A stretch of DNA of 64,000 bases from positions 1 through 64,000 of the forward strand of contig JAPMXV010000002.1 in assembly GCA_026936335.1 (NCBI GenBank), given 5' to 3'. The notes below the pieces were generated by a model. That model saw nothing but the letters and a program-made list of their open reading frames with translations, ran no database searches and was not told the DNA's origin. The DNA comes from Mantamonas sphyraenae STR306 (lineage: Eukaryota > Protista > CRuMs). The position numbers and the translations under genes are program-made. Below are positions 1 through 28,200 of the stretch, piece by piece (positions within the stretch are counted from its first letter, which is position 1; every line of letters begins with the position of its first letter).

Positions 1-248
1 ACCCTAACCCTAACCCTAACCCTAACCCTAACCCTAACCCTAACCCTAACCCTAACCCTAACCCTAACCCTAACCCTAACCCCTAACCCTAACCCTAACC
101 CTAACCCTAACCCTAACCCTAACCCTAACCCTAACCCTAACCCTAACCCTAACCCTAACCCTAACCCTAACCCTAACCCTAACCCTAACCCTAACTCTAA
201 CCTTAACCCTAACTCTAACCCTAATCCTAACCCTAACCCTATTCCTAG
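1..248. repeat. Telomeric repeat array (CCCTAA)n = (TTAGGG)n; left chromosome end
   Basis: About 40 tandem CCCTAA units from base 1. One CCCCTAA variant near 80, and degenerate units (CTCTAA, CCTTAA, TCCTAA, TTCCTA) at ~195-248 as expected at the proximal edge. Confidence 0.99.
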
Positions 249-892
249 TTTTTGGATGTTGCGGTCCGGTCTAGGTCGTGTGAGTTGTGCTTGAGTCTGT
301 TGGCGGGGTGGCTTAGTTTTGTGGTGACATGAGGAAGTGGGCAATGGGTGGGAGTGGAAATATTGCTGGTGAGTGGCCTTCGCCCTGCAACGCCGCGCAG
401 TCAGCACTGCCCGTCCGCCTTCAACCAAAATATCACCAACACCCGCCACACCCTCCACTAGTCCAACACAATCCACATACACTCCAGTACAACCACCACC
501 ATCATGGACAAAGACTACTCAAGCACTCCGAAGCAACAACACACACCCATCACCTACCCGGCGTGCGTTCTGCCTTCCACTCCGTTTTTCTGACTGCCCG
601 CTCCCGCTTCCTTGCCTCCTCCATGCCTCCGTCGCTTCCCTGCACTCCTCCCCTGCATCTCCACTTCCCCATCACCCCCGTTACTGTCTTCTCCGCTTTT
701 CTCCGATCCCCTCTCCCCTGTCACTGCCCTCCCCGTTGCCATTTTCCCCGTCTGCCAATCTCCTCCGTTTTCCCTCTTTGCTCGTTCCAGCCTCCCTTCA
801 CCCCGCTCCTGCCTTGACGGCGTCCGTTCCACCTTCCACTCACCGTTTCCACCCCGCCCTGCCCCTCCCTTTCCTCCCACAGCTATGCGTAC

Positions 893-3800: not shown

Positions 3801-4090
3801 ACCGGCAGGTTGAACGTGCCATCAAGAACACCCTCACCCGCGGTGTCACATCCCTCTCCCTCAAGATCGCCTGGCTTGACAACCCCAAACCCAGCGACGC
3901 AACACTGCACACCCTCCTCCACACCCTCATCGACCGCATCACACCCCACATTACCACCCGCCCCACCACCCCCGCACTCGTCAACGCCTACCCCATCCCC
4001 TCCTTCACCCTGCCCAGGCGCACAGACCCTTCCTCCTCTTCCTCCTCCTCCTCCTCCTCCTCCTCCTCCAAACGCCAACGCCTCGAATAA
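893..4090 (+). CDS. Subtelomeric hypothetical protein (1065 aa): Pro/His/Gln-rich and acidic N-terminus, then four homologous ~170-aa helical domains (A-B-A-B)
   Basis: Uninterrupted ATG-TAA ORF. An internal 1128-bp duplication keeps frame. The shared motif VRxGW...E...LLxH...HP...LxRxIxLxLGN...GVT...LKxxW...LLHxL occurs four times. No family recognised. Confidence 0.8.
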   Translation: MVPPMAAQPFPNMLPVSGVQNPYQHPQPPIIWVPVKAHPHQHHAYAHQGHPYYAYPPPPPPPPRQTAQTHFAQTPLHPPPAQPTTNHNRVRKRISPAFVGITRTTSTTTSSSSSHQATRQTGDSDDDDADQDTHIPDTSDVEDLMSLNFGHREARSNSSNSEWMTSSGMEAYEEDGEANDATQQQVDDEMETQGALSFADTDDAMDEEYMPQDDSDDDADDMEQEDTDEWQPRHTSRGSAQRPRGHISRHAGPQTIKGGGQSRLGFTAGSGTETGTSSTRARRTENGDTGAGKKAGVDKRNKLPDGVVRKGWKMGPSDDRSHSNKKEHTALLKHIHTLANQHPIDDITDLMTLQARVVVCHGTLNTLVRQILLALGNIPLSQGEISFCVILLGRNEDRRACRKAIPHAGLAMGVTKAGLKVCWMEEPHDHGDPNYALLHLLMTEMDTLGNRPHPTTWKEHEQTQLWLQKARRPADNNSDPHWTQCDYDHQLPTNKVETWHPESVRSGWSTYLHNDERGSCTAREFQSLLAHMKARAAKHPRHQHAHEHHALRELINNGSMNSLLRHIILALGNVGVPPVDLAFFVRLLRPRVTYRLLSPAIGNTLARGVTSLSLKIAWLDKPQPSDATLHTLLHTLIDRIIPYITTRPTTVDAVNTLDIPELVLPETTEEEVVATEDGLPDGVVRSGWTTWRKSERSHSNKKEHTALLRHMLTLANEHPIDNIPDLMTLQARVVVCHSTMTTLVRQIQLILGNIPLSQGDMAFCLILLGREIDQQACSHAIPHAGLAMGVTKAGLKVCWLEEPHDHGDPNYALLHLLMTEMDTLGDSPHPTTWKEHEQTQLWLQKARRPADNDSDPHWTQSDYDHQLTNTEVDKWYPESVRDGWNSANHGDERGSCTAREFQTLLAHMKARAAKHPRHIHTNEHQALRELINNGSLHSLLRHIILALGNVAVPPIDLVFFVRLLRPQLTYRQVERAIKNTLTRGVTSLSLKIAWLDNPKPSDATLHTLLHTLIDRITPHITTRPTTPALVNAYPIPSFTLPRRTDPSSSSSSSSSSSSSKRQRLE
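1799..3995 (+). repeat. Intragenic tandem duplication, period 1128 bp (376 codons)
   Basis: tgccagatggcgttgtgcgca at ~1800 and ~2928; gccatcccccacgctggtctggccatggg at 2102 and 3230; cccagcgacgc..cactgcacaccctcc at ~2762 and ~3890. The offset is constant at 1128. Confidence 0.95.
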
Positions 4091-4255: not shown

Positions 4256-7200
4256 ATGACCACGCGAAAACGATCATCGTCTCCAAAACACGCCCTTATC
4301 GTCGCTTCGGTCCTGCTAATCACAGCAGCTTTCACTGCGGCCTCCACACCATACACAGGCATGTTTCCTCCTCCACCAGCTCGCTCCCTTCCTCGTGCCA
4401 CCCCAACCGCTGTCTCCTCTGCCCGCCCCACCTTCTTCCCCGCGCCCCACCCCTGCTTACCCCTCGCTTCCTCCCGTCATCACCTCCGCAGGCCAAAATC
4501 ACGCAAAGTTCGTCCTGACCCCATGCGATGACTTTGCTACAAACACCAAAACCGTCTCCACATCGGCCACGGCTCCGTCCTACAGTGTCGACGTCAACAC
4601 GGTACAACCACGTGACACCCGCGTGACAACTCCCGGAAATCATGCCTTTGTTCCGGGCGACCTCATCCTACTCCAGCAGTTCATGAGCGCCGACCCCAAG
4701 CTAGACTCCTCTTCGAATCAGCTCGTACGTCCCCGTCACCCCTCCCGTCCACCTCCAACCCGCCTCCTCTTTGCACTCCCTGCACTCCCTGCACTCCCTC
4801 GAGAAAACACACGAAAATTCCCACTTCGCATGCCTTCCCCAGCCGTCACGCCGCACCCGCCCCAACCGTCCCTCTATCCCCTCTCCACCCTCACCCCCTC
4901 CCCCCCCCCCCCCCTCCCCGGCCTTCTGCCTCTCCATCACCTCGTCCACCTTACCCTTACCCTTGCCCACTCTGCTGCTCACACAATCTTCCACCTTCCG
5001 CATCACCCCGTCTCCCCTCTCCCAGGATCCCAACGCCTGGACCATCCGCAAAATCACAGAAACCGGACCGAACTGGTTCCTACTCGATGCCACCGTTCCG
5101 ATTGTCTGCCTGACCTCACAACACGCCAGGTGCCGCGCACATCGCTTCGAACGCATCGGCACCTTTCATCTCTCCGGCACCTATTCCGCCCCAGCCTGGT
5201 ACGCCCCGCCCTCTCCCCTCCCATCCCTCCCTTCCCCTCACTAACCCCCCCCCCCCCCCCCTTCCTCCCCCTCCCTCCTCCCCCCTCCCAGGAACGGCAC
5301 ACAAGGCGGCAACATCCTCCTCCACGTCCGCGAGTTCCACTTCAACGGCACCCTCTCTGCCAAAGGAAAGGGTTTCCGTGGTGGTCCTTCCGTCTCCAGT
5401 CTCAGCGCAGCCCCATCCGCACCTGGCTACCAAGGCGAGGGCGACCGATCCCTCAACGGCACCGGAGAGGAACCCGACTGGCACTTCCCCAACCACGACT
5501 ACAACGTCTACGCCTCTGCCTCCGAAACCTACGGCCCTGGCCAAACTGGAGGCGGCGCAGGACGCATCACCGAAAACGGCTTCTCTGGCGGCGGCGGCGG
5601 CGGATCTCGCACAGACGCCGGCAACGGAAACAACTTTCCAACCCCAGGCATCACCGCTAGTGGCCCCAAAGGCATCAAATCCCCGTTCAGAATGCACTGG
5701 GGTGGCGGTGGAGGCTCGGGCGCCGTCTTTGGCACCCAACAGCCCGCGGGTGCCTCCGGCGCAGGTGGAAACGGCGGCGGTCTCGTCGTCGTCCTCGCCG
5801 ACAAAATCATCCTCGGCCCTGCCGCGGTCATCGACGTCCGCGGCGACGACGGCATGAACAGCACACACACAGATTACTTCGGCACAGGCGGAGGCGGAGG
5901 CGCAGGCTCTGTCTTTGTCCAAGGTGACGGCATCGACCACGACAACCTCCCGGTTTCCCTTCTCCGTCTCAGCGGCGGTGCAGGACACACCACCACAGCA
6001 ATCAAGGGGCCCTCGGGCTCTGGTGGCGATGGTACTTCCTTCATCTTTGGCAAGTCCGGCTGCAACGCCGCCCTCCAGCTCAACAATCCGGCCTCGCCTG
6101 CAGAACCTCTACGCCTTCGCCTCACAAACCTCCACCTCGCCTCCACAAAGGCATGGGGATGCCCATGGCGCGATTGCTTCTTTCGCACCCCGCTCCCCGC
6201 CTACAACACCGTTTTATCACCTTTTTCCTCACTTAACTCCGTCAGCGCCACATCCTTCTTCTGCAGCACAGCAGGTGCTCTCAGTGCTGCCTGGCACTCT
6301 GCCCTCGACGCAGACTTTATCTCCTCCGTTGCTCTCCAGCACGGCCGTGTCGGCGGTCCCTGGACGCGCAGCAACCACGGTCTCTACTTCTCCAACGTCG
6401 ACAACTCCCAAAACGACTTCCAGCCACCCTTTGCCATGGGCCAACCATCCTCCGGCCCAGCTGACGACTGGTCCTACTTCTTCCCTGCCCTTCGCAACAT
6501 CCAATCCCCTCCTCATCTGTCTGTCGGAACCTTCAGCACCACCGCCGTCCTTGTTTGCCGCAGGCACCTCAACGTCACCTGCACCCTGCGTTCCTCCGCA
6601 AACACCACCGTTGTTTCGGGCTCCTTCTCCTCCCTCGACACCGTCGAATGCCCATTCTCACAACTCCCAGACCCGGCCCTCGACTACACCGTCACCATCC
6701 ACCTAGCGGGCCTCAAGGCTGCCTCCCTCTCCTTTGCACATCCCGCCGCACGCTACACACATCCAACCTCCTGTGACCACACCCTATACCCTTCCTCCAC
6801 ACTCGCTCCCGCGGAGCACATCCTCAACCAATACTACACTCTCGCCACAGACGTCCTCCCACACGCCACCACAATCTCCCTTGCCACCCTCCCCTCCCCT
6901 CCATTCACCTCATCCGACTACATCCTCCTCCACGCCACCCAGCGCCGCGACATCTCCCTTGCAAACGCCGCACGCGTGCCCTTTGCCTCCTCCTACATCC
7001 TCGCACGCGTACGCTCTGCAAACGGAAACCACCTCACCCTCGACCGCCCCGCAGGTGCCTTTTTCACACGCCTTGGCTCTCAACTCGTACGCGTCGCCAC
7101 CTACAATGCCCTCACCCTCCCCGACGGCGCATCCATTCTCCCCAAGCCCTGGGACGGCCACACAGGAGGCATCGTTGCCATTCGCGCTGCTTCCCTTCAT

Positions 7201-10200
7201 CTCCATCCGGCCTCCTCCATCAACGCTTCCGCAGCAGGCTTCCGTGGTGGTTCCACACCCCCTCACAGCGGACACGGCATGCCAGGCGAGGGCCAGTACG
7301 GCCTCCCTTCAATCCCCACCACCGCCGCTGCAGGTCTCGGTGCAGGTGCCGGTCCAAACAACCCTCCACGCAGCGGTGCAGGTGCTGCAGGCCCTTCCGC
7401 AAATGGTGTGGCTGCACAAAACTCTCCTGCACAGCCAGGTTGGCAGCCTCCCGTCCTGCGATCCCCGACCTTTGGCGGAGGCGGAGGCGCTGCAGGCGCA
7501 GACAACCCGGGCGATGGCGCACACGGCGCCACAGGCGGAGGTCTCATCGTTCTCGCTGTCGAGAATCCCATCACAGGCAACGGATCTCTCCTTGTCGACC
7601 CGGAACAGCCACGCTGTGGCAACCTTGCCTGTGGAGGCGCAGGCGGACACGGCGCAATCCTCTCCCTCGCCGCGTCTCAGGCTTCCTCCGTTCCGCCCAA
7701 CGCCACCCACGTTGCAGACGCTGCTGCTCTCTGCATCGCACCCTCCTTCTCACAGCGTCCTCAGACAATCCCCTCCTACATCCCGCTCTCCCTCGCCAAT
7801 TTGGCCCTCCCCACAGACACTTCACCCGCCCTCTTTGCTCCCTCTCTACATGCCCATCGCTCAGACGCTCGTCTCTCCTGGACACAGGCCAGGGACGCTT
7901 GCGTCGCGCACCACGGCCCCTCCGCTGTTCTCGCTCCCGTAACCTCGCCCACACAGCTCCAGTGGCTTCTCCGCCACGCCATGGCTCTCCAGAAACCGCC
8001 TTCCGTCGACGACCGCGTCTGGCTCGGCGTCCACTCTCAGCTGCACGCCGCCTCGACACGCCCTCTCGACCCGGACACGCCCTTCCTCGCCTACAATCCC
8101 AGCGTCTCTGCACGTTGGGTCTGCCAGGGCGGCTCCCAGCGCTTCTGTCAGCCCCAGGCCGCCGCAGCAAACTACACCAGCACCGATGCACGTGCTCTAC
8201 ACGCACTCGTTTTCGACCGTGCAGGCAACCTTCTCCTCGCAGGTGCACACGCGCAGAACCTCTTTGTCCAAAAGATCGACCCTGCAGGCGTCTCCCAGTG
8301 GCTCTACACCCTTACAGCCACCTCTGCCTCTCCCGTTGTCGACGCACTTGCCCTCGATCCCCAAGGCAACATCTACGCCGCCGCACGCACGTACGCCTCC
8401 CTCGACGCAAAGCCTCACCAGGGCGCCGCAGACATCTTCCTCCTCAAGCTCGATCCCACAGGCAACAAGCTCCTTTCCACCGCCTTTGGCACCTCTGCAG
8501 ACGATATCCCCGTCGCCCTCATCATGTCTGCAAATGCCTCCTCCTTCTATGTCGCCGGACACAGCGCAGGCGCAAACGCCCCGTTTGCAGGTCGCATTGA
8601 CGCTCGTACTCTCAGCCCGCACTGGGCACTCCTCAACGGCCTCCCTGCCACAGACGCTCTCCACGCCGCCTGCACAGACTCACACGACAACCTCTACCTC
8701 GCCACCGCAAACCAAACTCTCAAACTCGACTCTGCTGGCTCCCTCCTCTGGTCTGTGCCACACGTCGCACGCGCCTGCTTCGTTCACAACCAAACCTTCT
8801 ACGCCACAAACGCTTCTGCTCCCTCCCTCTTTACCCTCGACCCATCCACTGGCGCTCTCCTCTCCACATCCTCCCTCGCCCCCTCCTTCTCCGCTCTCCA
8901 CTCCATTGCCTTGACTCCGTCCGGCCTTCTCGTCCTCGCGGGTCACACTCCTTCCAACTCTCTACTCCAACTCGCCTCCCTCAGCACCCCAAACCAACCC
9001 ATCAACCGCTTCCTCGCTCCCTTTGCAAACAACTCCCGCCTTGCCGTCTCCTGTGCCTCTCAACTTGCGCTCGCTGCCCCGCTCTACACTCCCGCTCACT
9101 TCACTGCGCGCATCTATCCCTCCGCCGTGCCTCCCTCCATCATCTCTCCGACTACCTTCGCCGTCATCCCAGCCTCCACGACCTTCCTCGGCGCATCCTA
9201 CTCGCTCCAATTCGCCGATCCAGATTCCGCTCAGCTCACCCTCACCGTCTCCTGCGGCACAAACTGCTCTCTCAGCACCTCACGTGCCACCGCATCCGCC
9301 CAGCATCTCACTTCCCTTTGGGCCAACATCACCATGACCCCTCCCCCGTCTCCAGTGCCCACAAACAGACTCGTCGTCACCCTCGCCGACGAATCCACTT
9401 CCGTCTCCCTCAACATCTCCCTCCGAGCATGTGCTTCTCACGAGGTCTCCTCCTATGCCCTCCAGTTTGGCACTTCTGCAATCGACGCCCGACCACTGCC
9501 TGCCTTGGACACCGCAGGCAACCTCTTTCTCTCAGCACAGGTCTCCGCTGCCTATCCAGGTCTGACTCACCTTGGCGGAAACGACATCCTCGTCCTCAAG
9601 TACTCTCCAGAAGGCTCCTTCCTCTGGGCTCGTCAGTTTGGCTCCACAAACACAGACACTCCCTACGCCTCCACAACAGACTCGGCTGGCGCCCTCTACC
9701 TCGTCGGCGCGTCAACAACTGCCCCGTTTCTCGGCCAAACAAACGCCGGCTCCACAGACGCGTTTCTTGTCAAGCTTTCATCACACGGAAGCATCCTCTA
9801 CGCAAACCTCCTCGGCACAGTCGGAACCGAACGCTATACCGCTCTTGCCCTTTCCCACGACGAAAACGCCCTCTATGCCGTCGGCGCCTCCACCGCCGCT
9901 CTCTTTGCGGCACAAGCAGGAGGACCCTTTATCGTCAAGCGCGACGCACACACGGGCTCCCTGCTCTGGGGGTTCCAGACGGAGGACGCAGGCACCCAGA
10001 ACTACCTCGCCCTTGCCCTCGATGCAACACAACACGCCTATGCTGCCGGATCCACAACCGCATCCATCGGAGGCCAGCCCATGGTGGGCACCTCGGCGTG
10101 GCTCGTCGTCAAGTACGACGTCTCGCAAAACAATGGCACCTCGGCTCCCGTCTGGACGAGGCTTTTCTCCAGCGCAGGCACAGACTCTGCAAAGGCATGC

Positions 10201-13200
10201 GCCATTCTCGGCACCTCTCTCCTCGTCGCTGGTGACTTTACAGGCTCCTCTTTCCTCGCACAGCCTGGACACGGCTCCACCAACGCCGCACTTCTCGCCC
10301 TCAATACCACAGACGGTTCCGTCCTGTGGGCACGCTCCCTCTCCTCTCCTGCAACCTCGCCCCACGCCGTCTTCTTCACCAGCATCGCCGCCACGCCCAC
10401 AGGCCTCCTTGTCGCCGTCGGTGAGATCAACGGGCCCGTTCACAATGTCGTCCACCACGGCGATCGTGACGTCGTCGTCGCCGTCTACGACGCCTTGGGC
10501 TCCCTCGTCAACATCTCGGCCCTCGGGAACGCTGTCCATCAGTACCAGGCCACCGTCGCTGCCGGGTGCTCCCGCTCCATCGCAGTTGCTGCAATCACAA
10601 ATCCCACCAACCTCTACGCACCCTTTCTCGGTGGCGCCACAGACCTGTTTGTGCACACATACGCCCTCGACGTCCCTCCCTACTTTGCCACCCCGCTGCC
10701 GCAAACTCTCGACGTCACCACAACGGCCCTCGGCGCTGCACATCCGCTCGTAGTCGCTGACCCCGACAGCAACGTCACTCTCTACCTCACCTGCACGGCG
10801 TGCACCCCGTCCGCCTCATTCTGGACTGGCTCTCCCGCACACGTCTCTGAACAGTGGGCCAAGCTCACCGTCACTTTTGACACTGCCGTCCAGGACCAGC
10901 TTCTCAACCTCACCCTTGCCGACGGCACCTCTGTACGTCACTCCTCCTCTCGCATCCTTGGCGTATGCCCGCCCTTCAACTCTTCCTCCACCGCCGTGGT
11001 TCAGCCCTACCCGGACGCCATCTTTGAAGCTGGCTCCATTGATGCCTCCGGCGACCTCATCCTCGCCGGCATCCAGGACGGCAATGCCGTCCCCACCCTC
11101 CTCCTCGCCAAGTACTCTCCGTCTGGCTCACTCCTGTGGTCCCACACCCAAAGGGCATTTCGAGATCGTGCACGTGCTGTCGTCACCGATCCCCACCGCA
11201 ACATCTACGTGTGCGGCTGGACACACGACACCTCCGCCACACAAAACCTCGCCGCCGTCATCTACAAGTTCTCCCCTGCAGGCACCCCCTCTGGAACCAC
11301 ACCGTCGACACAGACCAGATCGACATGTTTACAGCCTGTGTCCTCACAAACGACGCGTCCGCCCTCTACGCTGTCGGCACCACAACAGGCGCTGCATTCG
11401 CTACCAACCAAGGTGGTGTAGACATCATCCTCCAAAAGGTGGACGCTGCAACAGGCACCCCCGTGTGGTCCCGCCAGTACGGCAGCTCCACAGCCGACGT
11501 CCTTAGTGCCGTCTGCATCGACGCAACCGACACCCTCTACGCCGTCGGCGAGTCTTCGGGCTCCTTCAACAACGCCTCATCACAGTCTGCACTTCCAGAC
11601 ATGCTCGTCATCAAGCTTTCTCCCTCTGGCCAGCACATGTGGACTCGCATGTATGGCACCTTGAACGCAGACACCCTCAGCGACTGCGTCGTCCTCAACG
11701 CCTCGCTCTACGCCGTTGGATATTCCTCGGGCCTCGACTTTTACACCCAGCCGCCACTCGGCGGCAGCCGCGACTCTGCCTTTGTCGCCATCGACACCGC
11801 AAGCGGCAACCTCACACACACCGCCCTCTTTGGCACCTCTGTAGATGACCGCGCCCAGGGTATCGCTCTCATCGGCAACGACGCCCTCCTTGTCACAGGC
11901 TACTCCGCTGCCAACGGCACCCTCACTCCAAACAACACATCCACCCACACGGACACCTACTACTCCATCCTCTCCTTCCAAGGCGACGTCCTCTCCACAC
12001 ACCGTGCCCTGCCCGCAACTGCAGACACACAGTCCACCTTTGTCGCTGCCTCTCCCCACTGCTCCCGCAACATGCTCATCGGTGGCTCCTTCGCCTCCTC
12101 CGCCTTTTTCCTCCCACTCACCGTCAGCGTGCCGCCCACCATCTCTCTCTCCTCCCGCATCGACGCCACAACCACTGCCATCGGCATGGACTACCCGCTT
12201 GCCATCTCTGACGTCGACTCCTTGTCACTCACCCTCACCGTCTCGTGCGACGCCTGCGTTCTCGCCGGTCTGTCGCTGCCCGCTAAAGGCACTCCTGCCT
12301 CCCTGCAGCAGCGTTGGTCCAACCTCACCGTCACTTTTGACCCTACACGAGGACGCAACATCTTCACTGTCTCTGTCGCAGACGCATACTCTCAATCCCG
12401 TGCCGTGGCTGCCGTCGTCGGCGGATGCCCCGCCTACCCCGGCGATCTCTCCCTTCACGACTCCATCTCAGGCAGCCAGGTCGCACATGGCAGCACCGTC
12501 GACAGCGAAGGAAACGTCATCATCGGTGGCTACACAGACGCACCCTACCCAGGCCACACCTACTTTGGCGGCACCAGCGATGTCTTTGTGCGCAAATTCG
12601 CTCCGGATGGCTCCCTCCTCTGGACCTGGTACGCAGGCACTGTGGCCGCAGACCACGTCTGGGATGTCAGTGTCGATCTCTTTGACAATGTCTACGCCTC
12701 GGCAGACATGCAGTCCTCCTACGCTGCCGTCTTTAAATTCGATCGCAACGGCAACCGTCTCTGGACGGCCACCTTTGACTCCACGGGCACAGATCTTGTA
12801 GACGCATGCTCTCCGTCGCACGACGGTGCACATCTATACGTCTCAGGCCAGACTACCGGTCCCCTTGTCCCCGAAGGCGCAAACCTGAACGGCCTCTCCG
12901 CCTTTGTCGCAAAACTCCGCGCCTCAGACGGACGCAGGCTTTGGCTCCGCCAAACGGGCACAACCACAGCGGCCGGCATCGAAGTAATCAGCAATTGCGT
13001 CGACCAGGCAGACAACGTCTACGTCGTCGGCGCTGCGAACGGCCCCTACAACGGCCAGATCCACATGGGTGCCAAAGACATCACCCTCATCAAGTACAGC
13101 TCGTCCGGTGACCTTCTCTGGACAAAGAACTACGGCACTGCCAACGACGACGCCGTCACCTTCTGCTACGTCCAGGACGCCACGCAGACACTCTTTGTTT

Positions 13201-16200
13201 CTGGATACGTCGCCGGAGCCTTCCAAGACCAGCCTTCGCAGTATGGTGCCGGCAACATCGACATCCTTACCATGTCCCTCAGTGCAAGCGATGGCTCCAT
13301 CAACTGGGCTCGTGTTCTTGCCAGCCCTGGTTTCGACGTCGCTTGGGGCGTTGCTCCGCTGAACCCGTCCCTCCTTGTCATCGCCGCAGAGACATCCTCG
13401 TCCCTTCCGGGCATGACCTCTTCTGGCGGCGTCGACATTGCCTACGCCGTCTACACTGTCAACGGCACTCTCCTCGATCTGCAGCAGCTCGGCTCGTCTG
13501 GCGCCGACACCCTTCGCAAGCTCCGTTCAGCTTGCAATGGACAATTTATCCTTGGCGGCTGGTCCTCCGGCACCCTGTTTGGCGGCCCGGCCATCAGCAA
13601 CGACGCTTTCATCGGACGCCGCCGCTTCAACGCCGCCCCAACCCTCCAGCTCGCCTTGCCCACCCAAGTTGGCGTCGTCCTCCGCACCCTCCCGGCTGCA
13701 TACCCATCACAGTCTCTGACCTCGACTCATCCAACCTCACCCTCTCCATCGCCTGTGGCGGCTGTGTCGTCCTCCCCAGCCCCGTCCTCACAGGCTCCCC
13801 CGCACACATTGCCTCCGCCTGGTCTACCCTCGACCTCCGCTTCGCAAACGCACCCTTCAACCAATCGCTCGTCATTTCTCTCACCGATGGCATCAACACA
13901 GTCACCAGGACTGCGTCCATCGTCGGCGGCTGCGAACCCGTCACCCCCTCTCAGTTCAACGCCCAAACGGGCACTTCCTCGAGGGAAGAGGCCGTTGCAT
14001 CCGCCGTGGATAACCGAGGCAACCTACTCATCGGCATCTATACACAGGGCACCTTCAACGGACTCGACAACAATGGAGGCAGCGACGACATCGTCATCTA
14101 CAAGCGCCGACCCGACGGTTCCAACTTTTGGGGCCGCTCCTTCCCCGCCCCAGGCAGTCAGGTCATCCACAGAATCGTCACTGACCACCTCGGCTACATC
14201 TACTTTGACGGCTTGTCCACCGGCAGCATCGATGGCACCACTCCCATTGGCGCCCAAAGTGATTCCATCATCTTCAAACTCCACCCAGCTGACGGCTCTA
14301 CTGTGTGGAAGCGCCAGTTTGGAACTTCCGCCGTCGACTACAACCATGGCCTCGCCCTCACCGCCAACGACTCGTACATTTATGGTGTCGGTGCAACGTT
14401 TGCCTCGTTTGCTGCACCAACCGCAGGCAGCTCTGACATCTACGTCACTCAGCTCCGCTCACAAGACGGTTCAACCGTCTGGTCGCACCAGGTCGGCTCA
14501 TCTGGATCCGACGAGGCCCGTGGCGTCTGCGTCGACCCACTTGACGACTCTGTGTTTGTGATCGGCTCCGTCTCCAACTCTGCAACCATCAACGGCGTCA
14601 ACAAGCCCAACGCGGACCGCGATATCATCGTCATCAAGTACGCCCTCAACGGCACCCACTTGTGGACTCGCTTCCAGGGTACCGACGGCACCGACGATGG
14701 CTGGACTTGCGTCACCCTCGGCAGCGTCCTCTACGTCGGCGCTATGATCGGTTCAAAGAACCTGCTCAATGGCACATCTCTCGACAACGGGAACAACCGA
14801 GCAGGCGCCATCTTTGCATTCAACACCGCCAACGGCGCTGACCTGTGGGTCCAGACCATCTGGGGTTCCGGCGAAACAAACGTTCAGAGCATGGCCCTCA
14901 CCTCAAACCGCAACCTCGTCATCGGCGGTTGGACCACCGCCGCTCTCCCAGGCAACACCAACGCGGGCAGCGAGGACGCTTGGTACGCAACCTTCCTACC
15001 CGACGGCACGCGCCTCGCCATCAAGCAGTTTGGCTCCACCGCTGCCGAACGCCTGCGCTCCATCGCCGCAGGCTGCAACAAACAGATCCTCATCTCGGGC
15101 TACACGTCGGGGAACCTCTTTGCTGGTCCTTCAGGCGACTACGACGCTTGGTACTCTTCTGTAGTCATCAACTCGCCCCCTACCGTCTCGGGCAATCCGC
15201 AGCATAAGCTGGCCAAGCTCTTCCACACAGGCGCGGACATGCCCCTCTTCTTTGCCGATCCCAACGACTACGGTGACCTTCTCACCGTGTCCATCCATTG
15301 CAAATCCTGCAACGCCACGCCTGCCACCCTGCACGGCACACCTGCACACGTTTCACAGACCTGGCTCGCCGTCACATTCGCCTGGTCACCCACAGAGACA
15401 AACGAAACGCTCGTCATCGAAACCTCCGACGGCATCGCCTCCGTCAACACCACCGTGCACGTGCTCGGTGGCTGTCCCCCCGACGGACCCGCCATCGGCT
15501 TGCAGTATTCGTACTCCAGCACCGGTGCCGACATCTTCTATGCCAGCACCTTTGATCTGGACGGAAACATCATCATGACCGGCTTCACCCGTGGTGTTCT
15601 CCCAGGCCACTCAAACGCAGGCCTTGAGGACGTCATCATTGTCAAGGCATCTCCTCAAGGCTCCATCATTTGGAGCAAGCAGTTCGGAGGCGCATCCTCA
15701 GACTTCTCCCAAGCAGCCATCACAGACTCCCAGGGTCGCATCTATGTCGCCATATACACAGTCTCAAACACGTTGCTCGGCACGTCGAGCATTGGCTTCC
15801 AGGATACCGTCGTCGCATGCTTCGAACCGAAATACGGCGATCTCGTGTGGGCTCGCCGGTACGGAACCACAAACGGCGCCGACAATCCATACGGCCTCGT
15901 TCTCAGTGCGAACGAAACCCTTCTGTACATAGGTGGCTTCACAGATGGCGCCTTCCCTGGTCTTACCAACGCAGGCGGCTACGACGGCTTTGTCATCCTT
16001 GCCGACGCAGACACTGGCTTCCAACGCAACGTGGTTATGTTTGGCGGCGGTTCGAACGAGGTCCATCGCGCGCTGTGTGGTGACGAGCAGGGCAACATCT
16101 ACTGGACCGGCGAGGTCAGAAGTGCCTTTGGCGGCGCCGTGCTCACCGGCCCCGTTGATCAGGGCGTCGTCAAGCTCAGCCCCACCCTCGACATCCTCTG

Positions 16201-19200
16201 GGTGACTGCCATGGGTACATCAGCACTGACTCTGGCCAAGCGTGCGCTGCTGGAAACGGCAACGTCTTTGTGGGAGGCTTTATGTACGGCAAGTACCTTG
16301 ACCAGCCGTACCACGGCGCCGCCGACGCATCTTTGGTTTCCTTGCGCGCTTCGGATGGCCAAGTACAATGGGCGCGCATGTTTGGCGGAAGCAACCAGGA
16401 CAAAATCTGGAACGTGCATCTCACCTCCTGGGGCCATGTTTTCCTTGTTGGAAACGTGAACGGCAACCTCGAGGGCTTCGACAACCTCCTTACAAACAGG
16501 GACAATGTCGTGTACGCTGTTTACAGCCCTTCAGGCAAACTCAAACTCTTGAACCAGTTTGGTGCAAACGACGATACCATCGTGCGTTACGGAGGTGTCA
16601 CCTGCGACTCGCTCGCTCTCGTCGGAGGCGACACAAAGGCCAGCCTCTTTGCAACGAATGGCGGCGGCACCGACGCCTGGGTTGCCACGCTCGACATTAG
16701 CTTGCCGCCCGATTTCGTCATGCCCCTTGTCCTCGACCCAGAGATCGAGCTCGGCAAAAAGGCACCGCTCTCGGAGCTCGCGAGCTACTCTTCAGCGCCC
16801 ATTCTTCTCAACGCCACTTGCACAGGATGCACCCTCAGCCAATCCTTCTTCACCGGCACTGTTGCCCAGGTGGCCAACGCATGGGCCCAAGTCACAGCCA
16901 CCTACGCCCCCTTTGTCGCATCCTCTCTCGTCCTGCAGGCCACAGACGCACACACGACCAGGACGTTCAACCACACCGTCCACTTTCGCACGTGCACCAC
17001 CATCGCCTCGTCTGCATACTCGCCCGTCCAGATCAACACTCCCGGAAACGACGTCGCTGCCGATGGTGCTTTCGATCCCGAGGGCAACGTGTACATCGCA
17101 GGGGAAACCACAGGCACCGTTGGCACGGGCAATCCCGCAGGGACCAAGAAAACCTATGTGCGCAAGAGCACCCCGGCCGGTACAAAGATCTGGGACCTGC
17201 ACATTTCCACAGGCTCCACTGGCAACGCAGCCTTTCGCATGGTCGTCGACCGCGCGGGCAACTCGTATGTCGGTGGCCGCGTCGAAGGCACCGGTTCTCT
17301 GCCCGGCCAGCCTGCTGCAGTCGCCGATGACGCCTACGTGCTCAAGATCAACCCGGTCGGCGAAATCGTCTGGATCCGCCAGTTTGGCACATCCGGGAGC
17401 GACCACACCCACGGGCTCGCTCTATCCACCGACCAGTCTCACATCTACGTCGCTGGTCTCGTTCCCGGCGGCCGCAACTTGTACGCACCTTCCAACGGCG
17501 ACGACGACTTCTTTGTCGCCAAATACCGCGTTTCCGACGGTTTCTTGGTGTGGGGCCGACAGAACGGCGCCACAGGCATCGACACCCTCGGAGACATCTG
17601 CGTCGACCCCAACGACAACGTGTACGCCGTCTTGGCAACCGCTGGGCAAATCCCAGGTGGACCCACCACAACATCAGTTGATTGGGGCCTCGTCAAGTAC
17701 ACCAGCTCCGGAACCTTTCAGTGGTTCAAGTCTGTCGCCGGAAGTGGGATTCAGGACGCGGCACGGGCTTGCGTCGCAACCACAAGCACGCTTTTTGTTG
17801 CCGGCGAGGTGAGTGGCAACGTTGGAACCATCACGGGCATCTCCAGCCCTACTGGCGCCATGATGGCCTTTCAGGCCTCGAACGGTGCAAACACCTGGAT
17901 GGTCGCCAAGGGCTCGGCAGGCACCGACCGCATCTATGGCCTGGCTATGGTCAACGGACTTCTCCTCATGGCTGGCTATGTGCCAAACGATTCCGTCTCC
18001 CCGTACACCACCGCCGGCGGCAACGACTTTTTCTCTGTCACCGTCTCCCAAACCGGCTCTGTCGTCGCCTGGAGGCAGTGGGGCGGAACTACCCACGACA
18101 CCATCCTCTCTGTCGCCGCAGGCTGCGCAGGCAAAGCTCTGCTCGTCGGCAAGACCCGCTCCACAATCGTCGTGAACCCCACCACGGAGAGCATGTACTA
18201 CGAGGTTGTCGACATGGATGTGGCACCCGCCCTGGACACTCCCAATGTCGAAATCCAGCCAACTTGGACCAGCTTCAAGAGCGACTTTCAAGTCAGCGTT
18301 GCCGATGACGGCGACAACATGTTGCTCCAACTACATTGCATCAACTGCACCGTATCTCAGTCCCACATCTATGGCACTCCCAACCAGATCCACCAACAGC
18401 TCAAGGACGTCGTGGCATCCTTTGATGCCACCAACCCGCACCAGTGGCTGAACCTCACCCTCTCCGATGGCATCCTCTCTTCCCAGGCTGTCACACGAGT
18501 GGCCACCTGTGGCACCACGCCACCCCCTGTAGCCCCCGCACCGTTCCAGTTTGGCACCATCTCCAACGATGAGGCCTATTCCGTTGATATGACATACGAT
18601 GGCTCTTTTGCCATTGGTGGCTGGACCGGAAATGCCTTTCCAGGGCAGACCAACAAGGGTAATGTCGATGCGTTTGTGCGAGTCTACGCTGCCTCGGGTA
18701 CCGAGCTGTGGACCAGGCAGTTTGGCAGCTCCGTCCACGACCAGGTCAATGCAGTTGCCATGGACTCTCGCGGAAACGTTTACGCTGTCGGCTACACCCA
18801 TGCCACTGGGTCCTTTGAGGGACAAACCAAATCAGGTGCCAACGATGTGTTTGTCATCAAATTCAACCGATTTGGACTCACGCAGTGGGTCAGAATCCTC
18901 GTCGGCACAAGCTCCGATATTGCGCACGACTGCGCCGTGTCCAAAGACGGCCAGCATGTGTACGTCACAGGCTCCACGCAGGGCACCATCGAAAACTTTC
19001 CCAGCGCGTCGGGGCAATCTGGATTCGTCGTCAAACTGCGCGCAGACAATGCTCAGCTAGTGTGGGTCCGACAGACCAGCGGTACCAATGTCTATGGCCA
19101 AGGCATCTGCCTGGATGCAAGGGGCGACGTCTTCGTCACAGGCTATGCGGCCAGTTCCCTCAACGGCCAAACGTTTTCGGGCTCCTCGGACATCTACCTC

Positions 19201-22200
19201 GAGCACTATGACAGCAAAGGACAGCTTTTGTGGACACGAATGTGGGGCACCACCGCTGACGATCGTGGCTACCGCTGTCAGGTGATTGGAACCACCGTCT
19301 ACCTTTCCGTCGTGTTTGGGGCCAGCTTCAACGGTGAGACTTTCCCTGTGGGTGCCGATCGCGCCGCTACGGTCATGTCTGTACGCACAAACGACGGAGA
19401 CCTCCAGTGGACGCGTTTTGTCGACAGGGATGCGCAGATCGGACGCATGGGCATGACGATTGTCGGCGACGAGCTCATTGTCATCACCGCCGTATCCAAA
19501 GGCAAGGCACCGCCTTTGGGCACCAACAAAGACAGTTTGGTGGCAGCGTTTGGCACCGACGGCGCAAGGTTCAGTGTGGACCTCATCGGCTCCACTGCCG
19601 ATGATTATGGCCGCTTCGCCGCGTCGTCGTCCTGCTTTGGCATCGGCGTTCTCGGAGGGCACACTCTTGGCCCTCTCTACGGACCCAACTCTCCAACCAG
19701 AATGCAGGTCTTTGTCGACCCGCAGACGTTTGCGCCACAAATCGGAGGCCTGCCTTTGACCATGCCGGTTGTCATGACTGCCGTGGGAGCAGAGTATCCG
19801 ATCAGTCTCGCCAATCCCATGGGTCCAGGCGCCACCATGACCCTCTCGGTCTCGTGTTTCCACTGCAACCTCAGCAGCAACATCGCACAGCCCCTAACAG
19901 GCACACCCCAGGCCCTGAAATCCGCCTGGGCCTCTGCAACAGTCTCGTTCAGTCCCGTGCACGGCAACGAGACCCTGGTTGTCTCTGTGTCCAACGGCCT
20001 GCGCTCGTCACAGCACCGTGTCCAAGTTACGGGTGCCTGTTCTCCGCCGCGGCCCGCATTCACACGCCAATTCGGAGACACAGCCAACACCATCAACGAC
20101 TACGCGCCGCATGTCATCAGAGACACCGATGGAAGCATCGTCGCCACGGGATACTCCTTTGGTGCCGCATTCCCGGGCCACACGAACCAGGGCGTCCACG
20201 ACCTCTGGCTCGCAAAGTGGGACGCCTATGGCAGCCTTCTGTGGAACATGCAGATGGGTACCAGTGCCGCAGATGTGTTCTGGAGGGTCGATGCAGACAC
20301 ACAGGGCAACTACTACGTCGCAGGCTGGACATCCACAGCCATCGACGGCCAAACATACATTGGGGGTGGTGGGGACGGTCTCGTCGTCAAGGTGGCCTCC
20401 GACGGCACGCGGCTTTGGACCAAACTCGTGGGAACCACAGACACCGATGCCGCCATTCGTGCCATACCCTCCATTGACGGTCAGCACGTCTACGTTGCAG
20501 GGAGGACTCTCCTGAACATGGTTGGGGCAGGCACATTCAACGGCAACTCTTTCTACCTGGGCATCCTGTCTGCAAGTAACGGGCGGCTCTTGTCCCAGCA
20601 CCAAGCGGCCGTAGAGAGCGATGCCGAGCCTCTTGACATGTGCATGGACATCCAGGGCAACGTCTACCAAGTTGGCATGACCTCAGGGACCGTCGCCTCC
20701 CAAACATACTTTGGCGGCCCCAAGGACCAGCTCATCGTCCGCTTCACACCCTCTGGCTCAACTACCTACCAAAAGATTTTTGGTACCAGCGGCGATGACG
20801 TCGCTGAGGCCTGCCTCGAAACAAACGGCGTCCTCTACGTTGTTGGCAAGCTGAACAACCAGCCTTCCATCAGCAGGCACGTTTCTGGCACCGGCACCAG
20901 ATCGTGGGTTCAAACCATCTCCACCACCAACACGGGTTCCATCAACGGTATCGCCTTGTACGGCAACGGTATCCTTGCTGTTGCTGGCGAGACCAACGGC
21001 GCCGTCCAATCGCTTGTTGGAGTCGGTGGTGCAGGGCTGGGCAGCTTCTACGCCTTCTTCACTTCAGAGGGCGCTCTGCGCTCCGTCCATCCGTTTGGAT
21101 TTTCCACGTCAGTGGTGTCCACTCGTGTCGAAACAATGGATGCGGTGTGCACCAAGCAGCTCGTCCTTGCAGGCGACACAGACACAGATCCGACCGGAAC
21201 CGCTATGAACAACGTGCAGGCCTTCATCACTGTGGTGGATACAAACATTCCACCCATCTATTCCGGTCTGCCCAGCATCTGGCGCAACACCGACCCGAAT
21301 CTGGGCAACTCCAACTTGCAGCTTGTCGACGACGACGACTCGGTGCTCACCATGTCTTTCTCCTGCCAACACTGCCAGTTGCCCTTCAACTCTCTCACCT
21401 CGAGTGCCGCCCTCCTTGTCGCTGCCTTCAAAGATTTCAGCCCAACCTACAGTTCCGACCACGGTCTGGACGTGCTCACTGTGACATTCAGTGACGGCCA
21501 GGTGGATGTCAAGCACAACATATCCATTGTTGGGGGTTGTACTGCCTCGCAAACGACCTCTTTCCAGTATGGCACAAGTGGCCTCGACAACCAACGTGCG
21601 CATGCCATCGACAACCAAGGCAATCTGGTCGTAGTTGGACACACACGCGGTAGTTTCCCGGGTTTCGCAAACGCAGGTGGCGATGACATGTACGCGCGCA
21701 AGTACTCTCCTTCGGGTCAGCTCATCTGGACCTGGCAAGGCGGCACGGACGCTTCCGAAGTAGCCACCGCCGTCGCCGTGGATCCGGCAGGCAACGTCTA
21801 CGTCGGTGGTGATTTGACGGCGACTGGGCCTTCTGGCCATGTCGTGAACACCTCGGCGGTTGTCTACAAGCTCCGTGCCGCAGACGGCAAGATCGAACGC
21901 CAGCACATCGTGTCGGCACCCGCTGCAAACACATCCATGGTCGCCCTCGCCACCTATGGTGCTGTCGAACCCGAATTGTATGCTCTCATGTCAACTACAG
22001 GCGGCGTCCTTGCAGGGTCCGCCGGAAACAACACCGTGGGGCGGGCCGCCGTCCTCTACAGATTCAACTACAACGGCGATCTCCTCAAGACGCATCAGTT
22101 TGGCAACACCGTCGATCTGGTGCCCACCAGCCTTTGCGTCGACCCGGTGTACACCGTCGTCTACGTCACCGCGTCCACCTCCGCTGCGGTTGACAACCAG

Positions 22201-25200
22201 CCATTCGCCGGCGGTTCCACAGACCAGATCGTCTATGCGTTCAGCACCGGTCTCTCGTTGCTCATGGCACAATCAATCGGAACCGCAGCCGATGACACGG
22301 CCTTTGCATGTGCTGCGCGCAACAACGTCGTGTACGTTGCAGGGTCGATGGGCGCATCGTTCATGGACCAGCCGCACGCCGGTGGCCAGGACGTCTCCAT
22401 CGTGGCTGTCCGCATGCACAACAACCAGGGTGAGATCCTATGGGCTCGCTCCCTTGGTTCGTCTGCCACAGACAGTCCGACTGCCATTGCGTTTACCTCC
22501 CCCAACACTCTCTTTGTGCTGGGCAGTACCGACGGCGCTCTCCCTGGACAGTCTTCAGCCGGAGGCCGTGACGTCTTCCACGCCCTCTACGACACCTCGG
22601 GCAACAGGCACAGTCTCGTCCAGCTGGGCACCTCGGGCACCGACCAAGCATCTGCCTCCTCGTACGGCACTGGATGTGCTGGACAGGCTTTGGTTGCTGG
22701 TACGACCTCGGGCACCCTTGTCGGTGAAACTTCGGGTGGTGTCGATGGCTTTGTGCAGGTCGTTTTGCCCAACGTCGCACCCGTCGTTTCGGGCATCCCT
22801 TCGCAGGGTATCTCCGCCGATGTCACTGCCCTCGGCGCCGTCCACAACATCTCTTTCACCGATCCTGACAGCACCGTCATCTCTGTCAACATCACGTGTG
22901 ACGTGGGCGTCGTCACACCCAACTATCTCAACGGCACCGCCACACAGCTTACACAAGCGTGGCCCGCAGTCACGGCCTCCTTCCAAGCAAATGCAACCAA
23001 CGGCACGCTCACCTTCCACGTGAGTGACGGCAAGTCGACCACCTTGGCGACCGCCCGTGTGTATGGCGGCTGTGCAGGGCGTGCAGCCGGTTTCACATCC
23101 GCATATGGCAACAGCAACCAGCAGGACCGCTCCTTTGGCGCAATCGATCGCGAAGGCAACGTGTACAGCGTTGTTGCCACCGCCGGAAGTCTCGATGCGG
23201 GCCCTTCCGCAGGCTCGTGGGACTGGTATATCCGCAAGTACTCGCCAGCGGGTGCTGTGTTGTGGATCAGGCAACTCGGAGGCGACAACGCCGACTTTGT
23301 CCACCACTCCCTCACAGACACCTTTGGTTCTCTGTACGTGGTTGGCGCCACCCAAAGCTCGGATTTTGAAGGCCTTTCGCCTTTGGGGTCGTGGGACTAC
23401 GTTGCCGCCAAATTCTCTCCTTCGGGCAACACGCTTTGGGCCAAGCGGCTCGGCAATACGAGCCTTGACATGTTCCACTCTGCCGCCATCTCGCCTGATG
23501 GCCAACGCTTGTATGCTGTCGGAGAGGGCGTTGATTCCATCTACGACCCTGTTCCGGGAGGCAGCCCTTCCGCAACCGTCGTCTCCTTCAACGCATCCAC
23601 AGGTGCCGTCATCTGGGGCTCCCAGTTCGGCTCGTCCTCCACTGACCGGGCCGAAGGCGTGTGCGTCGATGCCACCGGCGATCATGTCTATGTTGTCGGC
23701 CAGACAAGCGGAAATCTCCAAGGCAACTCTCCCGTTGGCCTGTACGACGCCTTTGTGGCAAAGTACACAGCCGCAGGTACTCGTGTGTGGACGCGACTCT
23801 ATGGTTCCACTTCCGATGACGACGCATTTGCGTGTGTAGTCCACAACGATCGCGTGTACGTCACTGGCCTGGCTGGAGACACGGCTGCGCCCTTCCTTGG
23901 CCAAACAACCGCCGGACAGCCAGACGCGTTTGTCGTGGCCATTGATGCCGCCCAAGGAAACGTCCAGTGGGTACGGCTCGTGGGTACTCCAGCGGACGAT
24001 TCTTCCGCTGCCATTGTGAAAACCCCGGACAATCTTCTCGTGATTGGCGGATTCGTCAACGGCCCCTTGCCTGGAAACACCCACAGCAACGACAGGGATG
24101 CCTTTTATGCTGCGTTTCTGTATGACGGTACCATGGTCAAGGCAACCCAGTTTGGAACAACTGGCAAGGATCAAGTCATGGCCATGGACGTCAACTGTGC
24201 CGGCCAACTGGCCATCTTTGGCAAGAGTGGAGGCGACATCTTTGGCGTCAACAACCAGGGCGCCTTTGACGCTTGGATCATGTCCACGTACATCCCGCAG
24301 CCAAGTGTGTACGGACTTCCCGACACAATCGATGCAACCGTGCGCAACATCGGCACCGCCTTTCCCCTGGACATCCGTGCCACTGTCGACACGTCCATGA
24401 CCCTGACCCTCTCGTGCAACCACTGCACCTTGTCGACACACGTGCTCACCGGCTCCGCTGCAGACCTTACACGTGCGTGGGGTGACGTCACCGTCCTCTT
24501 TCACACTGTCCTCAACGATACCTTGACCGTGCGTGTCAACGCCAGCCAAGATGCGTCCACCGAGTTGGCCAAGCCAGTGCGCCATCTCTGTGTCGACGCA
24601 CAGGCGGGGCCCAGCGATGCGCAGCTGTCCAAGCCCCTCGAGGCCCTCAGCGCAGCTTCTACCCAGCACTACTACATCTGCGAGGCTCGTCCTCAGCTCA
24701 AGTGTTTCTGGGGCGATTCCATTGGATACACTGACGCCAACGTCACCAGCTACCTCAACATGTCCTGTGCCTTGCCGCCTCGTTCGTCCTTTTCCCAGCC
24801 CGTCCAACAGCTCAGTGCCAGTGCTTGGATTGACGGCGTCCACCTCAACGACCACCACCCGCTGGATGTCTGGACCAACCGTAAGTCTATCACACACATG
24901 CCTTTTCCTTCTTCTCCTTTGTTTTTTTTTTTGCTCACATCCGGGTCCCCCTCAATCTCGCAGTCAACGACGGTGTGTATGACATGCACATTGAGTCACC
25001 CAGCGATGCACAGCGCCCCGTGCTCTTTTCCAACCAGGTCGTCGACGACTTCAACCAGTTCTACAACATCACACAGACCATCGAATCACACGCGATCTCC
25101 ATTGCACTGAGCTCCGTCGAAGGTCTCGCCCCGAACGATCGCATCCTCTTGTACGCATTTGGCAACTACAACCAAAAGTTCACTCACGGTCACTACGACT

Positions 25201-28200
25201 TTGTCGTGGTCGACCGCATCGTGGGCAACACCGTGTTTGCCGTCTCGCCCATTCTCGCGCGATACCAGACCGGATCCGCCGTCGCCATCAAGTACGTACA
25301 CTACAGCAGCATCACTCTGCGTGACGGCGCTCAAATCCGCGCCCGTCCCTTTGACGGCTCGCGCTACGGCATCCTCGTGCTGTCCGCCGAGCACATCTAT
25401 GTTTGTCCCACATGTGCCATCGATGCGTCCGCCTCCGGCTTCCGCGGTGGCGCTTCGCAATCCATCGTGGGCAGCGGCTACCGAGGCGAGGGCCCAAGCG
25501 TGTCTGGACCTGTTTCTGTGCGCTCCTCCGCCACAGACATGTTTGCAGGTGGAGGAGGTGGCCCCTCATGTGCTCCTGGTCCAGGTGCGCCCGGTGGCAA
25601 CAGGCCAGGCTCGTTCATTTCCGTCTACGGCTACTCGACCGCGTGCCGTGCAGACCCGACCTGGAATCCATCCACGCAGCCGCCAACTCCGTCTTTTGTC
25701 CGAGCTCCTTTTGGTACAGGAGGCGGCAGTGGGTCCAGTACCGTCAACGGTGCCACGACGGGTGCTGGGGGTCGTGGAGGAGGCGCCATTCTGGCTGTGG
25801 CCAAATCCATTTCCGGCGGAGGCCGCTTTGTCTCTCGCGGTGGAGATGGACAGTCTGCGTCCGCCGTGGGTGCATGTGGCGGAGGAGGCGGTGGAGGCGG
25901 TTCCATTGTCCTCTACACCGACTCTGGGTCCGCAGACGTGCTGTTTGACGAGGCAGGCGGCAAGTCGGGTGCATGTGGTCCACCTCCTCCGCCCTTTTCC
26001 CCCGTCAAGACCGTCCCCACCTACCTGGCTGGAGATGGCGTCCACAACATCCTTCCTTACATGCGTGTGTCAACAACGTTGCCCAGCGTCACCGAGGTGT
26101 CCATTGGCAGTGTCCACGAGCTCGTGTTTTCCATCGACTCTGTGCAGACGTCTTTGGCCATCCAAACCAACGCCGCCCGCTGCCCGTATCGCCACTGCTT
26201 CCACGGCCTCTCGGGCGTTGCCACCACCTCGGGTGCGGCTTCCTGTGCCGCCCTAAATACCTCGGCGCTCTTTGGCTACGTCCATTCCAAAAACGAAAGC
26301 GGATCCGCGGCAACGTGGCTCCTCGCCGCCGGTTGTTCTCTGCAATCCACAACAGACAGCGTGCACATGGGTCTCCAGGTCGAGACAACCGGTCTCCAAC
26401 GCGGCTTCACCGTCTCCCAAGATGCCCTCGACGGTTCCGCCATCGATTATTTCAACTGGAAGCCAGGCCAACCGTCGAAGCTCAAAAGCGCACCCACAAT
26501 CATTGTCAAGCCGGACTACGACTACAACCTGATGCAGTCCGTCTCCGATTCCTTCCCCGGGTGCGTCATGTGCAGACGCCTTCCGGTGCTAAAGTGTGAC
26601 TTTGGAGGCGGCCTTGCCGCTCCTTTGGTCCAAGTCAACACCACGCACGTCGCATGCAACGTCTCCCAACTTCCAGTCACGGGTTTCCACCGTGTGCTCG
26701 TCCGCCATGCCGGCCACCCTCTCCATGTCCCGCGCTCCCTGCTTGCCATCGCTCCCACCGACCCTGCACGGTGCTCTCACAACATGACTGCCCTCCACAA
26801 TGCCGGCTCGCCCATCACCGTGCGCATCCGCGCCGTGGACACCTTTGGCAACACCCAGTTTCACAACCGCGACGTCTTCAACGTGTCCGCAGTCGGCCTA
26901 TCGGGCCGTGGCCAGGGTGTGGTCCTCAACACGACGGTGACAGTCGACGCGTCCAACTCCAGCACGGGCTTCTACACAACCACCTTTTCGCTCACCCTTT
27001 CCGGCACTTACCAGCTGCATGTGAGTCTCGGCGGCGCTTCCATCCAGCAGTCTCCGTCGGTCTTTCAAATCAAGTGGGGTGTCGTCGACATCTACCCGCG
27101 CGTGGTCTCCAAGCTGCCTTCTCCGGCGCAGACCTTCCTCACGCGCACCTCCCCCGTCTTTGAGTGGACCTTCCAGGTGTTTGACATCTACAACAACAAC
27201 GTCACGCAGTGCCTGCCCTACCTTGCCGAGATCACCCCTCCTGCAGGCGTCAACCTCACTGCTGGCAATCTCGTCACCACAAGCAACTGCGCTGCCGCTG
27301 CCGTCACAGCACGCTTCTACGCACTCGACACTGTCTATCCGGGCACATACACCTTTGTCTTTGGACGTTCCGTCTCTGCCTTCAACGCAGCCACAGAGTC
27401 TCCGGCGACGTTTGTGGTGGCTTGGCCCATCACAGCCGCAAATGCCACTCAGCTGGCGTTGTCTTCCTCCTTGTCCAACTTGACCGCAGCCGACACTTTC
27501 AACATTACCGTCACCGCCAAAGACGCACAAGGCATTGACCGCACAGAGCGAGCTGACGACACCTTTGTTGCCCAGCTCCTCGGCACACCCACTGCGGTCG
27601 CTAACTTCACTGTGGCCCCGTCGTCACAGGGCGTTGCCGTCTACCAAGCAACCCAGCCGTTGCACTATACGATTGCAGGCAACTACACCCTGCATGTGCT
27701 GCTCCGATCTGCGGTGCACATTGCAGGCTCCCCGTTTGCCGTCACAATCAGCGCCGCGGCAGCTTCTGCTGCCACAACGCGTCTCTTTCCCCTTGGAAGC
27801 GGTGCACACACGGCAGGTCTGCATTTGCCCTTCATTGTCCAGGTCCGTGACGCCTACAACAATCTGCGCACAGAGCAGTTCACGCCGGACCTCGTTGTCT
27901 CTGCAACCGGAACCGCGAACCTCACCGCTGCATTGCAGTGGGACGGACCGTTCGGTAGGGCAAACTACACGGGCCAGGTGACTCCCACACGTACAGGCAC
28001 CTATTTGCTGCACGCAACCCTCGCAGGAGCACATGTTCTGGGAAGCCCAGCCTTCTTCTTTGTCAATCCCGCCGAGGCTGATTACAACCAGACGGAACTG
28101 CTAAGCACTGTGCAAACAGCCGTTGCAGGTGACACTGTGCTCAACCTCGTGCGCCTCCAGACGCGCGACAGGTTCGGCAACAAGAGGTTGTTGCCGACAA

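Follow-up and report, generated by a model that had tools for sequence, protein, structure and literature searches.

Can a small extracellular domain be interrupted by thousands of residues and still be rebuilt from its two distant pieces? The question is raised by a giant gene in the first 64,000 nucleotides of contig JAPMXV010000002.1 (positions 1 to 64,000; assembly GCA_026936335.1) of the marine protist Mantamonas sphyraenae STR306, the whole of which is referred to below as the window. The window begins with a telomere, making the gene subtelomeric; it occupies the + strand as a single unit from an ATG at 4256, in a signal-peptide-like exon, to a stop codon at 42508, and its product is estimated to be a multipass membrane protein of ~12,500 aa. 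Three super-modules follow one another in this protein, each consisting of a beta-sandwich with a Gly-rich unit and of an IPT-like domain in which a C-type lectin-like domain (CTLD) is embedded, and after them come a filamin/IPT/Ig-like stalk, a Cys-rich region and a multipass membrane domain. As a preliminary description of the locus had proposed, the lectin lies inside the IPT-like domain in all three, modules 1 and 3 being contiguous and module 2 being interrupted, with 11 propeller-cadherin units standing between its halves. The parts of module 2 and its insert are these.

7729..7815, + strand: module 2 IPT N-half, first two strands
7830..8130, + strand: module 2 CTLD N-part, with beta1, helix 1 bearing C1 (7900), helix 2, WLG (8020), a loop and an extra Cys (8122)
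8137..24591, + strand: insert of 11 tandem propeller + cadherin-like units
11287, + strand: assembly error 1, one base missing (all three short-read runs)
13702..13706, + strand: assembly error 2, one base missing (all three short-read runs)
16221..16222, + strand: assembly error 3, one base missing (all three short-read runs)
24589..24591, + strand: last Cys of the final cadherin-like domain (LCVD), candidate for a neck disulfide with Cys 8122 (proposed pairing)
24592..24684, + strand: module 2 CTLD C-part, with a linker, a beta4-equivalent and beta5 bearing C4 (24679), and without a WND motif
24685..24879, + strand: module 2 IPT C-half
24881..24963, + strand: GT-AG intron linking module 2 to repeat 3 in frame

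Both halves of module 2 read as had been claimed: in the N-half the Cys of helix 1 is encoded at 7900 and the WLG motif at 8020, and in the C-half the Cys of YYICE is encoded at 24679, ahead of the IPT C-half. One residue has to be reassigned, in that the LCVD Cys (24589), previously attributed to the lectin C-half, lines up with the Cys that is invariably the last in each cadherin-like linker and not with lectin C2. A WVC-x7-FC motif (8122-8146) considered as a local C3-C4 partner was also rejected, since 8146 holds the Cys with which units normally start and the genuine C-half is matched at 24.6 kb. The insert comprises ~5,490 aa and 22 domains, to be compared with a host domain of ~135 aa, and in the corrected frame the distance from lectin C1 to C4 is 5,594 codons.

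A first concern is whether the coding sequence itself can be trusted, given that the assembled array shifts frame three times (~11287, 13702-6 and 16221-2) and that further frameshifts occur downstream, as might be expected of an assembly artefact or a pseudogene. Short-read contigs hold one extra base at all three sites (3/3 DNA runs), and the array frame is therefore continuous; the three runs belong to one study and possibly to the source sample, and the check tests the letters, not the biology. Introns and real lesions were likewise ruled out as the cause of the frame changes, which are not introns and at which the short reads restore the base. With both junctions also present in one unbroken frame in a paralogous gene, C26, and with units only ~30% alike, so that mis-joining of repeats is implausible, an artefact or pseudogene is highly improbable. 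Several more frame changes in the stalk (window ~32870-34100) are probably assembly errors too. A second way of dissolving the problem, removal of the array by splicing or cleavage so that a normal CTLD re-forms, is very unlikely. Sequence inspection revealed no donor-like splice site at 7950-8260 and no dibasic or furin-like sites at the array necks, and the AGs at 24480-24690 are all pyrimidine-poor, unlike most real acceptors of the giant gene; two genes, moreover, preserve the array as an intact and conserved coding frame.

Do the two distant halves belong to one module? The preliminary description had looked to modules 1 and 3 of the same protein for the answer, but the halves barely match these (z < 3, not significant), and it is paralogues that carry the case. 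Four were found by searching the genome (25,061,354 bases, 78 contigs) with each half separately, and are designated C26, C54, C53 and C61. Module 2 is unsplit in the C54 and C53 genes. The window N-half aligns with residues 2-115 of the unsplit C54 module (31% identity, E 3e-14, z 20.6) and the C-half with residues 143-233 (30% identity, E 9e-17, z 24.6), and the two tile this module without overlap, as the C26 halves also do. In the C26 gene module 2 is split likewise, by 8 units, and the whole can be read in a single 10,900-aa frame free of stops; C1 and C4 lie 4,170 residues apart, and the insert has 4,056 residues. The C61 gene (~292600-292900), a candidate for a third split gene, turned out to be unsplit, with a module 2 CTLD cut to ~40 aa and a module 3 that keeps EPN and WND. 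The number of array units in module 2 thus forms a natural series of 0, 0, a truncated CTLD, 8 and 11. Unsplit paralogues, a split 8-unit paralogue in one open frame, and a fold model all lend strong support to the proposed nesting of an array within a CTLD within an IPT domain.

The lectin and IPT identities of the modules come from profiles and from that model. Pfam searches with single modules were mostly blank, and the window N-half alone reached Lectin_C with an E of only 0.16; the CTLD is seen only via a profile of the paralogous modules, which matches solved CTLDs (single-domain E 3e-10) and in which the module-2 C1 and C4 (window codons 7900 and 24679) form the invariant alignment columns C59 and C166. 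The profile of the module-2 C-half matches IPT arrays. For the fold, the evidence comes from modelling the unsplit C54 module with AlphaFold (predicted local distance difference test, pLDDT, 74.7): the first ~33 and last ~64 residues form a seven-stranded IPT/TIG sandwich (plexin IPT, Z 10.4, root-mean-square deviation (rmsd) 2.3, 86 aligned), with IPT fold matches of Z 10.4 and 9.5 over the range 1-233 (~85 aligned), and residues 34-168 form a CTLD (Z 9.0, rmsd 2.8, 92 aligned). The insert certainly lies between beta2 and beta4/5 of the CTLD, and the best reading of the insertion site, judged from its spacing to C4, is the beta3-beta4 hairpin. EPN/QPD and WND are absent from module 2 in all paralogues and from window modules 1 and 3, and without these motifs in module 2, sugar binding by the split domain is unlikely. 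The same motifs are present in C54 modules 1 and 3, as in module 3 of C61; judged by sequence, the two C54 modules (348547-347900 and 345016-344348) are probably true Ca2+-dependent mannose-type lectins inside IPT domains.

When did the units enter? Trees of module 1, module 3 and repeat 3, rooted at the midpoint and with the repeats rooting each other, join the window and C26 genes as sisters (99/99, 98/96 and 100/97) nested among unsplit genes, with C54 next to the pair and C53 and C61 outside. The last units of the window and C26 arrays are mutual best matches, and the first unit in the window is nearest the first of C26. The simplest history would be one insertion into the unsplit ancestor of these two genes, followed by a change in unit number. 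The host CTLD of module 2 was already degenerate and non-sugar-binding when the units were inserted. Window and C26 share 42% identity in the IPT-N segment, 44% in CTLD-N and 34% in IPT-C, as against 41-43% in intact modules, and a degree of conservation equal to that of intact modules is an argument that the halves continue to fold as one. Both split genes retain C1 and C4, and the extra Cys (8122) occurs in these two only, being absent in C54 and C53. It could be countered that the halves never re-form one domain but persist as partly folded caps or packed on neighbours, the array being a linear extension of the stalk. All five paralogues have a degenerate CTLD in module 2, and the one in C61 is ~40 aa long, so the domain is dispensable; the N-half, moreover, has local cysteines at 8122 and 8146. 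Such an arrangement is nevertheless unlikely: two genes that are only 30-45% alike conserve both halves, interdigitating IPT strands and C1/C4 included, as well as they do intact modules, Cys 8146 is a feature of every unit start, and a two-strand IPT fragment would hardly be stable alone.

The inserted material is itself a regular structure. Unit-start cysteines occur at 8146, 9430, 10966, 12426, 13931, 15473, 16993, 18508, 20038, 21538 and 23071, and the array ends at 24589. Each unit is an SBBP/CylK-like seven-bladed propeller joined to a ~100-aa bacterial cadherin-like domain, ~510 aa in all (432 aa in the first unit), and the units are ~30% identical to one another. A modelled unit (pLDDT 90.1) shows SBBP repeats in seven four-stranded blades, and its propeller is closest to CylK (Z 53.3, rmsd 1.7, 378 aligned, 26% identity); among named sequences its nearest relatives are for the most part SBBP proteins of bacteria, at ~30-35% identity. 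The spacer has no Pfam match and resembles Cadherin_4/Big_9 (atlas features 0.93-0.94, best named matches 10/10 in one clan). Long propeller-cadherin arrays also occur elsewhere in the genome, at C25 ~181-211 kb (~17 linkers), C67 ~9-24 kb, C1 ~66-87 kb and C30 ~25-42 kb, none with a match to the lectin module; the presence of arrays in genes without this module marks the array as a reusable cassette. A quick tree of the units was mostly unresolved, and matching scores among several C25/C67/C1 units suggest recent duplication.

How, then, might the halves meet? The gene product would be a giant surface glycoprotein made as a single chain, its probable role being adhesion or sensing. In the endoplasmic reticulum (ER), the N-half would wait ~15-30 min of translation, at an assumed 3-6 aa/s, and then pair with the C-half of its own chain, an event completing both the CTLD, with its C1-C4 disulfide, and the IPT sandwich. 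That this disulfide closes a loop of ~5,590 residues is a reasonable inference, since both split genes retain the two cysteines and a C1-C4 bond is canonical for CTLDs (PMC6468738). A second disulfide, between Cys 8122 and Cys 24589, may staple the neck around the 5,490 residues. By elimination, the last linker Cys of the other units is likely to be bonded to the final blade of the propeller that follows; the final linker Cys, 24589, has no next propeller, and together with the extra Cys 8122 ahead of the array it makes a natural candidate pair. The array would hang off the stalk as a closed necklace ~15-28 nm across, built of cadherin-like spacers with pendant propellers, and it is enticing to picture this necklace as a multivalent binding surface for which the split CTLD/IPT would act as a clasp rather than as a lectin. 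Closure within one chain, giving a closed loop, is on balance the outcome we consider probable. The term lasso, applied in the preliminary description, is too strong: in the literature, a complex lasso is a covalent loop pierced by a tail (PMC5118788), and a closed loop alone is implied here.

Several observations weigh against closure of this kind. Several units have odd Cys counts, which makes the pairing of cysteines by elimination soft. The C54 model is of low confidence at 107-157, a segment that covers the insertion point (~140-146), which leaves the beta3-beta4 placement tentative. Known inserts are small and have close termini (median 115 aa, ~14 Å; PMC13114784), unlike a linear 22-domain array. 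Finally, a freely jointed chain estimate, which puts same-chain closure of 11 units at 30-165 µM and the ring at 16-28 nm and as such speaks for closure, is rough, with assumed step lengths, and ignores stiffness and excluded volume.

The same rough estimate places a neighbouring chain at 30-50 nm at ~13-60 µM, which is of the same order, and so brings in the possibility that the halves pair between chains. A new C-half would in that event capture the waiting N-half of a neighbour (e.g. on the same polysome), yielding covalent dimers or a mesh in which window and C26 products are possibly mixed. The long translation lag would leave N-halves unpaired, swapping of the long loop is known among CTLDs, as in snaclecs (PMC6468738), and conservation of both halves fits equally well. 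Having 8 or 11 units does not tell the two readings apart, however, and a membrane-anchored protein of 12,500 aa that formed covalent polymers would, in our judgement, have to get them through ER quality control; pairing between chains seems to us improbable. A bolder proposal, for which we see only a slender chance, has the clasp halves, made 15-30 min apart, closing either on their own chain, as an 8- or 11-propeller ring, or on that of a neighbour, stitching receptors into a surface mesh. If it were true, ring size would be set by repeat number, and giant receptors would be covalently joined at the cell surface.

Reunion of sequence-distant N- and C-terminal halves as one unit is familiar from the SMC/Rad50 head, flagellin D0/D1 and streptococcal antigen I/II, where antiparallel coiled coils or hairpins guide the halves over ~1,000 aa or less. 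The module-2 halves differ in having no such zipper and in being kept apart by globular domains strung into a necklace of five times that length. Neither a paper describing the architecture nor one drawing the flagellin analogy was found in a limited literature search. No outside protein with the CTLD-in-IPT/array architecture emerged from the best 150 representatives (mostly CTLD/IPT repeat proteins), length-limited protein searches, a metagenome scan and the atlas, all of which are weak blanks.

Known domain insertions offer the closest frame of reference. In an ECOD survey of such events the median insert is 115 aa, the termini are ~14 Å apart and the insert is smaller than its host in 77% of cases, with the cyanobacterial RNA polymerase Si3 region (640-690 aa) as the showcase complex example (PMC13114784). 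Module 2 shares with the nested A1-B1-C-B2-A2 architectures of ECOD an interrupted host and two levels of nesting (array in CTLD in IPT), and differs from the inserts surveyed in its ~5,490 aa and 22 domains, ~40x the size of the host, and in a unit number that varies between paralogues. It belongs to domain insertion as known, exceeds the largest region of the survey about eightfold and breaks the rules of size and termini. With CTLDs (PF00059), including the loop-swapped snaclecs (PMC6468738), it has in common the fold, C1, C4, the W-x-G beta2 motif and an altered variable beta2-beta5 pole; in contrast to them it lacks EPN/QPD, WND and the canonical C2-C3 pair, is embedded in an IPT domain and is interrupted by thousands of residues. 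The fold of IPT/TIG domains (PF01833; plexin, CAMTA) is here recovered from two separate chain segments, and all modules carry a CTLD between the second and third strands. The array units have the same seven-bladed propeller as CylK and other SBBP proteins (PF06739; PMC8916777). The active site of CylK, an alkylating enzyme, requires Arg105 of its N-terminal domain, at the interface (PMC8916777), whereas a unit aligns only to CylK 250-653, without that domain, and has extra conserved Cys and tandem cadherin-like spacers within a eukaryotic membrane protein. As in lasso proteins, a disulfide would close a backbone loop, but one of ~5,594 aa; lasso loops are mostly 5-100 aa, and a large one that is highlighted has 417 aa (PMC5118788; bioRxiv 10.1101/2025.03.21.644650).

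The remaining features of the gene and its surroundings are as follows.

1..250, strand not assigned: telomeric CCCTAA repeats
4256..4358, + strand: exon 1, signal-peptide-like N-terminus (sequence reading)
4359-4491, + strand: probable GC-AG intron after the signal-peptide exon (sequence reading)
6058..6744, + strand: module 1, with IPT N-half, contiguous degenerate CTLD and IPT C-half
6751..7728, + strand: repeat-2 beta-sandwich + Gly-rich unit, closest database relatives being unnamed, bacterial-type proteins
26046..26759, + strand: module 3, IPT with contiguous CTLD; QPS replaces EPN, and WND is lacking
26760..39690, + strand: stalk of filamin, IPT and other Ig-like repeats, with two filamin repeats split by inserts
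39701..42508, + strand: Cys-rich Ephrin_rec_like/DUF7630 region, multipass membrane domain, acidic cytoplasmic tail and stop codon

The repeat-3 sandwich + Gly-rich unit (24975-26048) resembles unnamed protein clusters of Myxococcota and phage (atlas 0.94-0.96). In the stalk, two DUF4082-like sandwiches (28359-29740; Pfam E 0.0017) split one filamin repeat, a similar stretch being found in C61, and a divergent twelfth propeller (30600-32250) interrupts another ahead of its last strand. The multipass domain (40150-42300) weakly matches the fungal-type TRP family PF06011 (E 2e-4), and the cytoplasmic tail has a faint RGS-like match (E 0.13). Beside the telomere, a 1,065-aa open reading frame (893-4090) has no convincing Pfam match.

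The nested insertion in this gene is real, well supported and extreme: with sister genes bearing 8 units or none, the insertion is not in doubt, and reunion of the halves, closing a very large loop, is probable, the ring being for now inferred. Such a loop, held on a stalk, would likely present a multivalent surface for adhesion or sensing. According to surveys, a domain must be small and have its termini close together to be inserted, yet here a host of ~135 aa carries 4,056 or 5,490 residues with its halves conserved. The series of genes with 0, truncated, 8 and 11 units makes the folding in the ER of a discontinuous domain whose halves emerge many minutes after one another directly testable, and lets closure into protein rings or polymers be tested as well. 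More broadly, the locus portrays a deep-branching eukaryote that builds its surface proteins from bacterial-type parts via repeated loop insertion.

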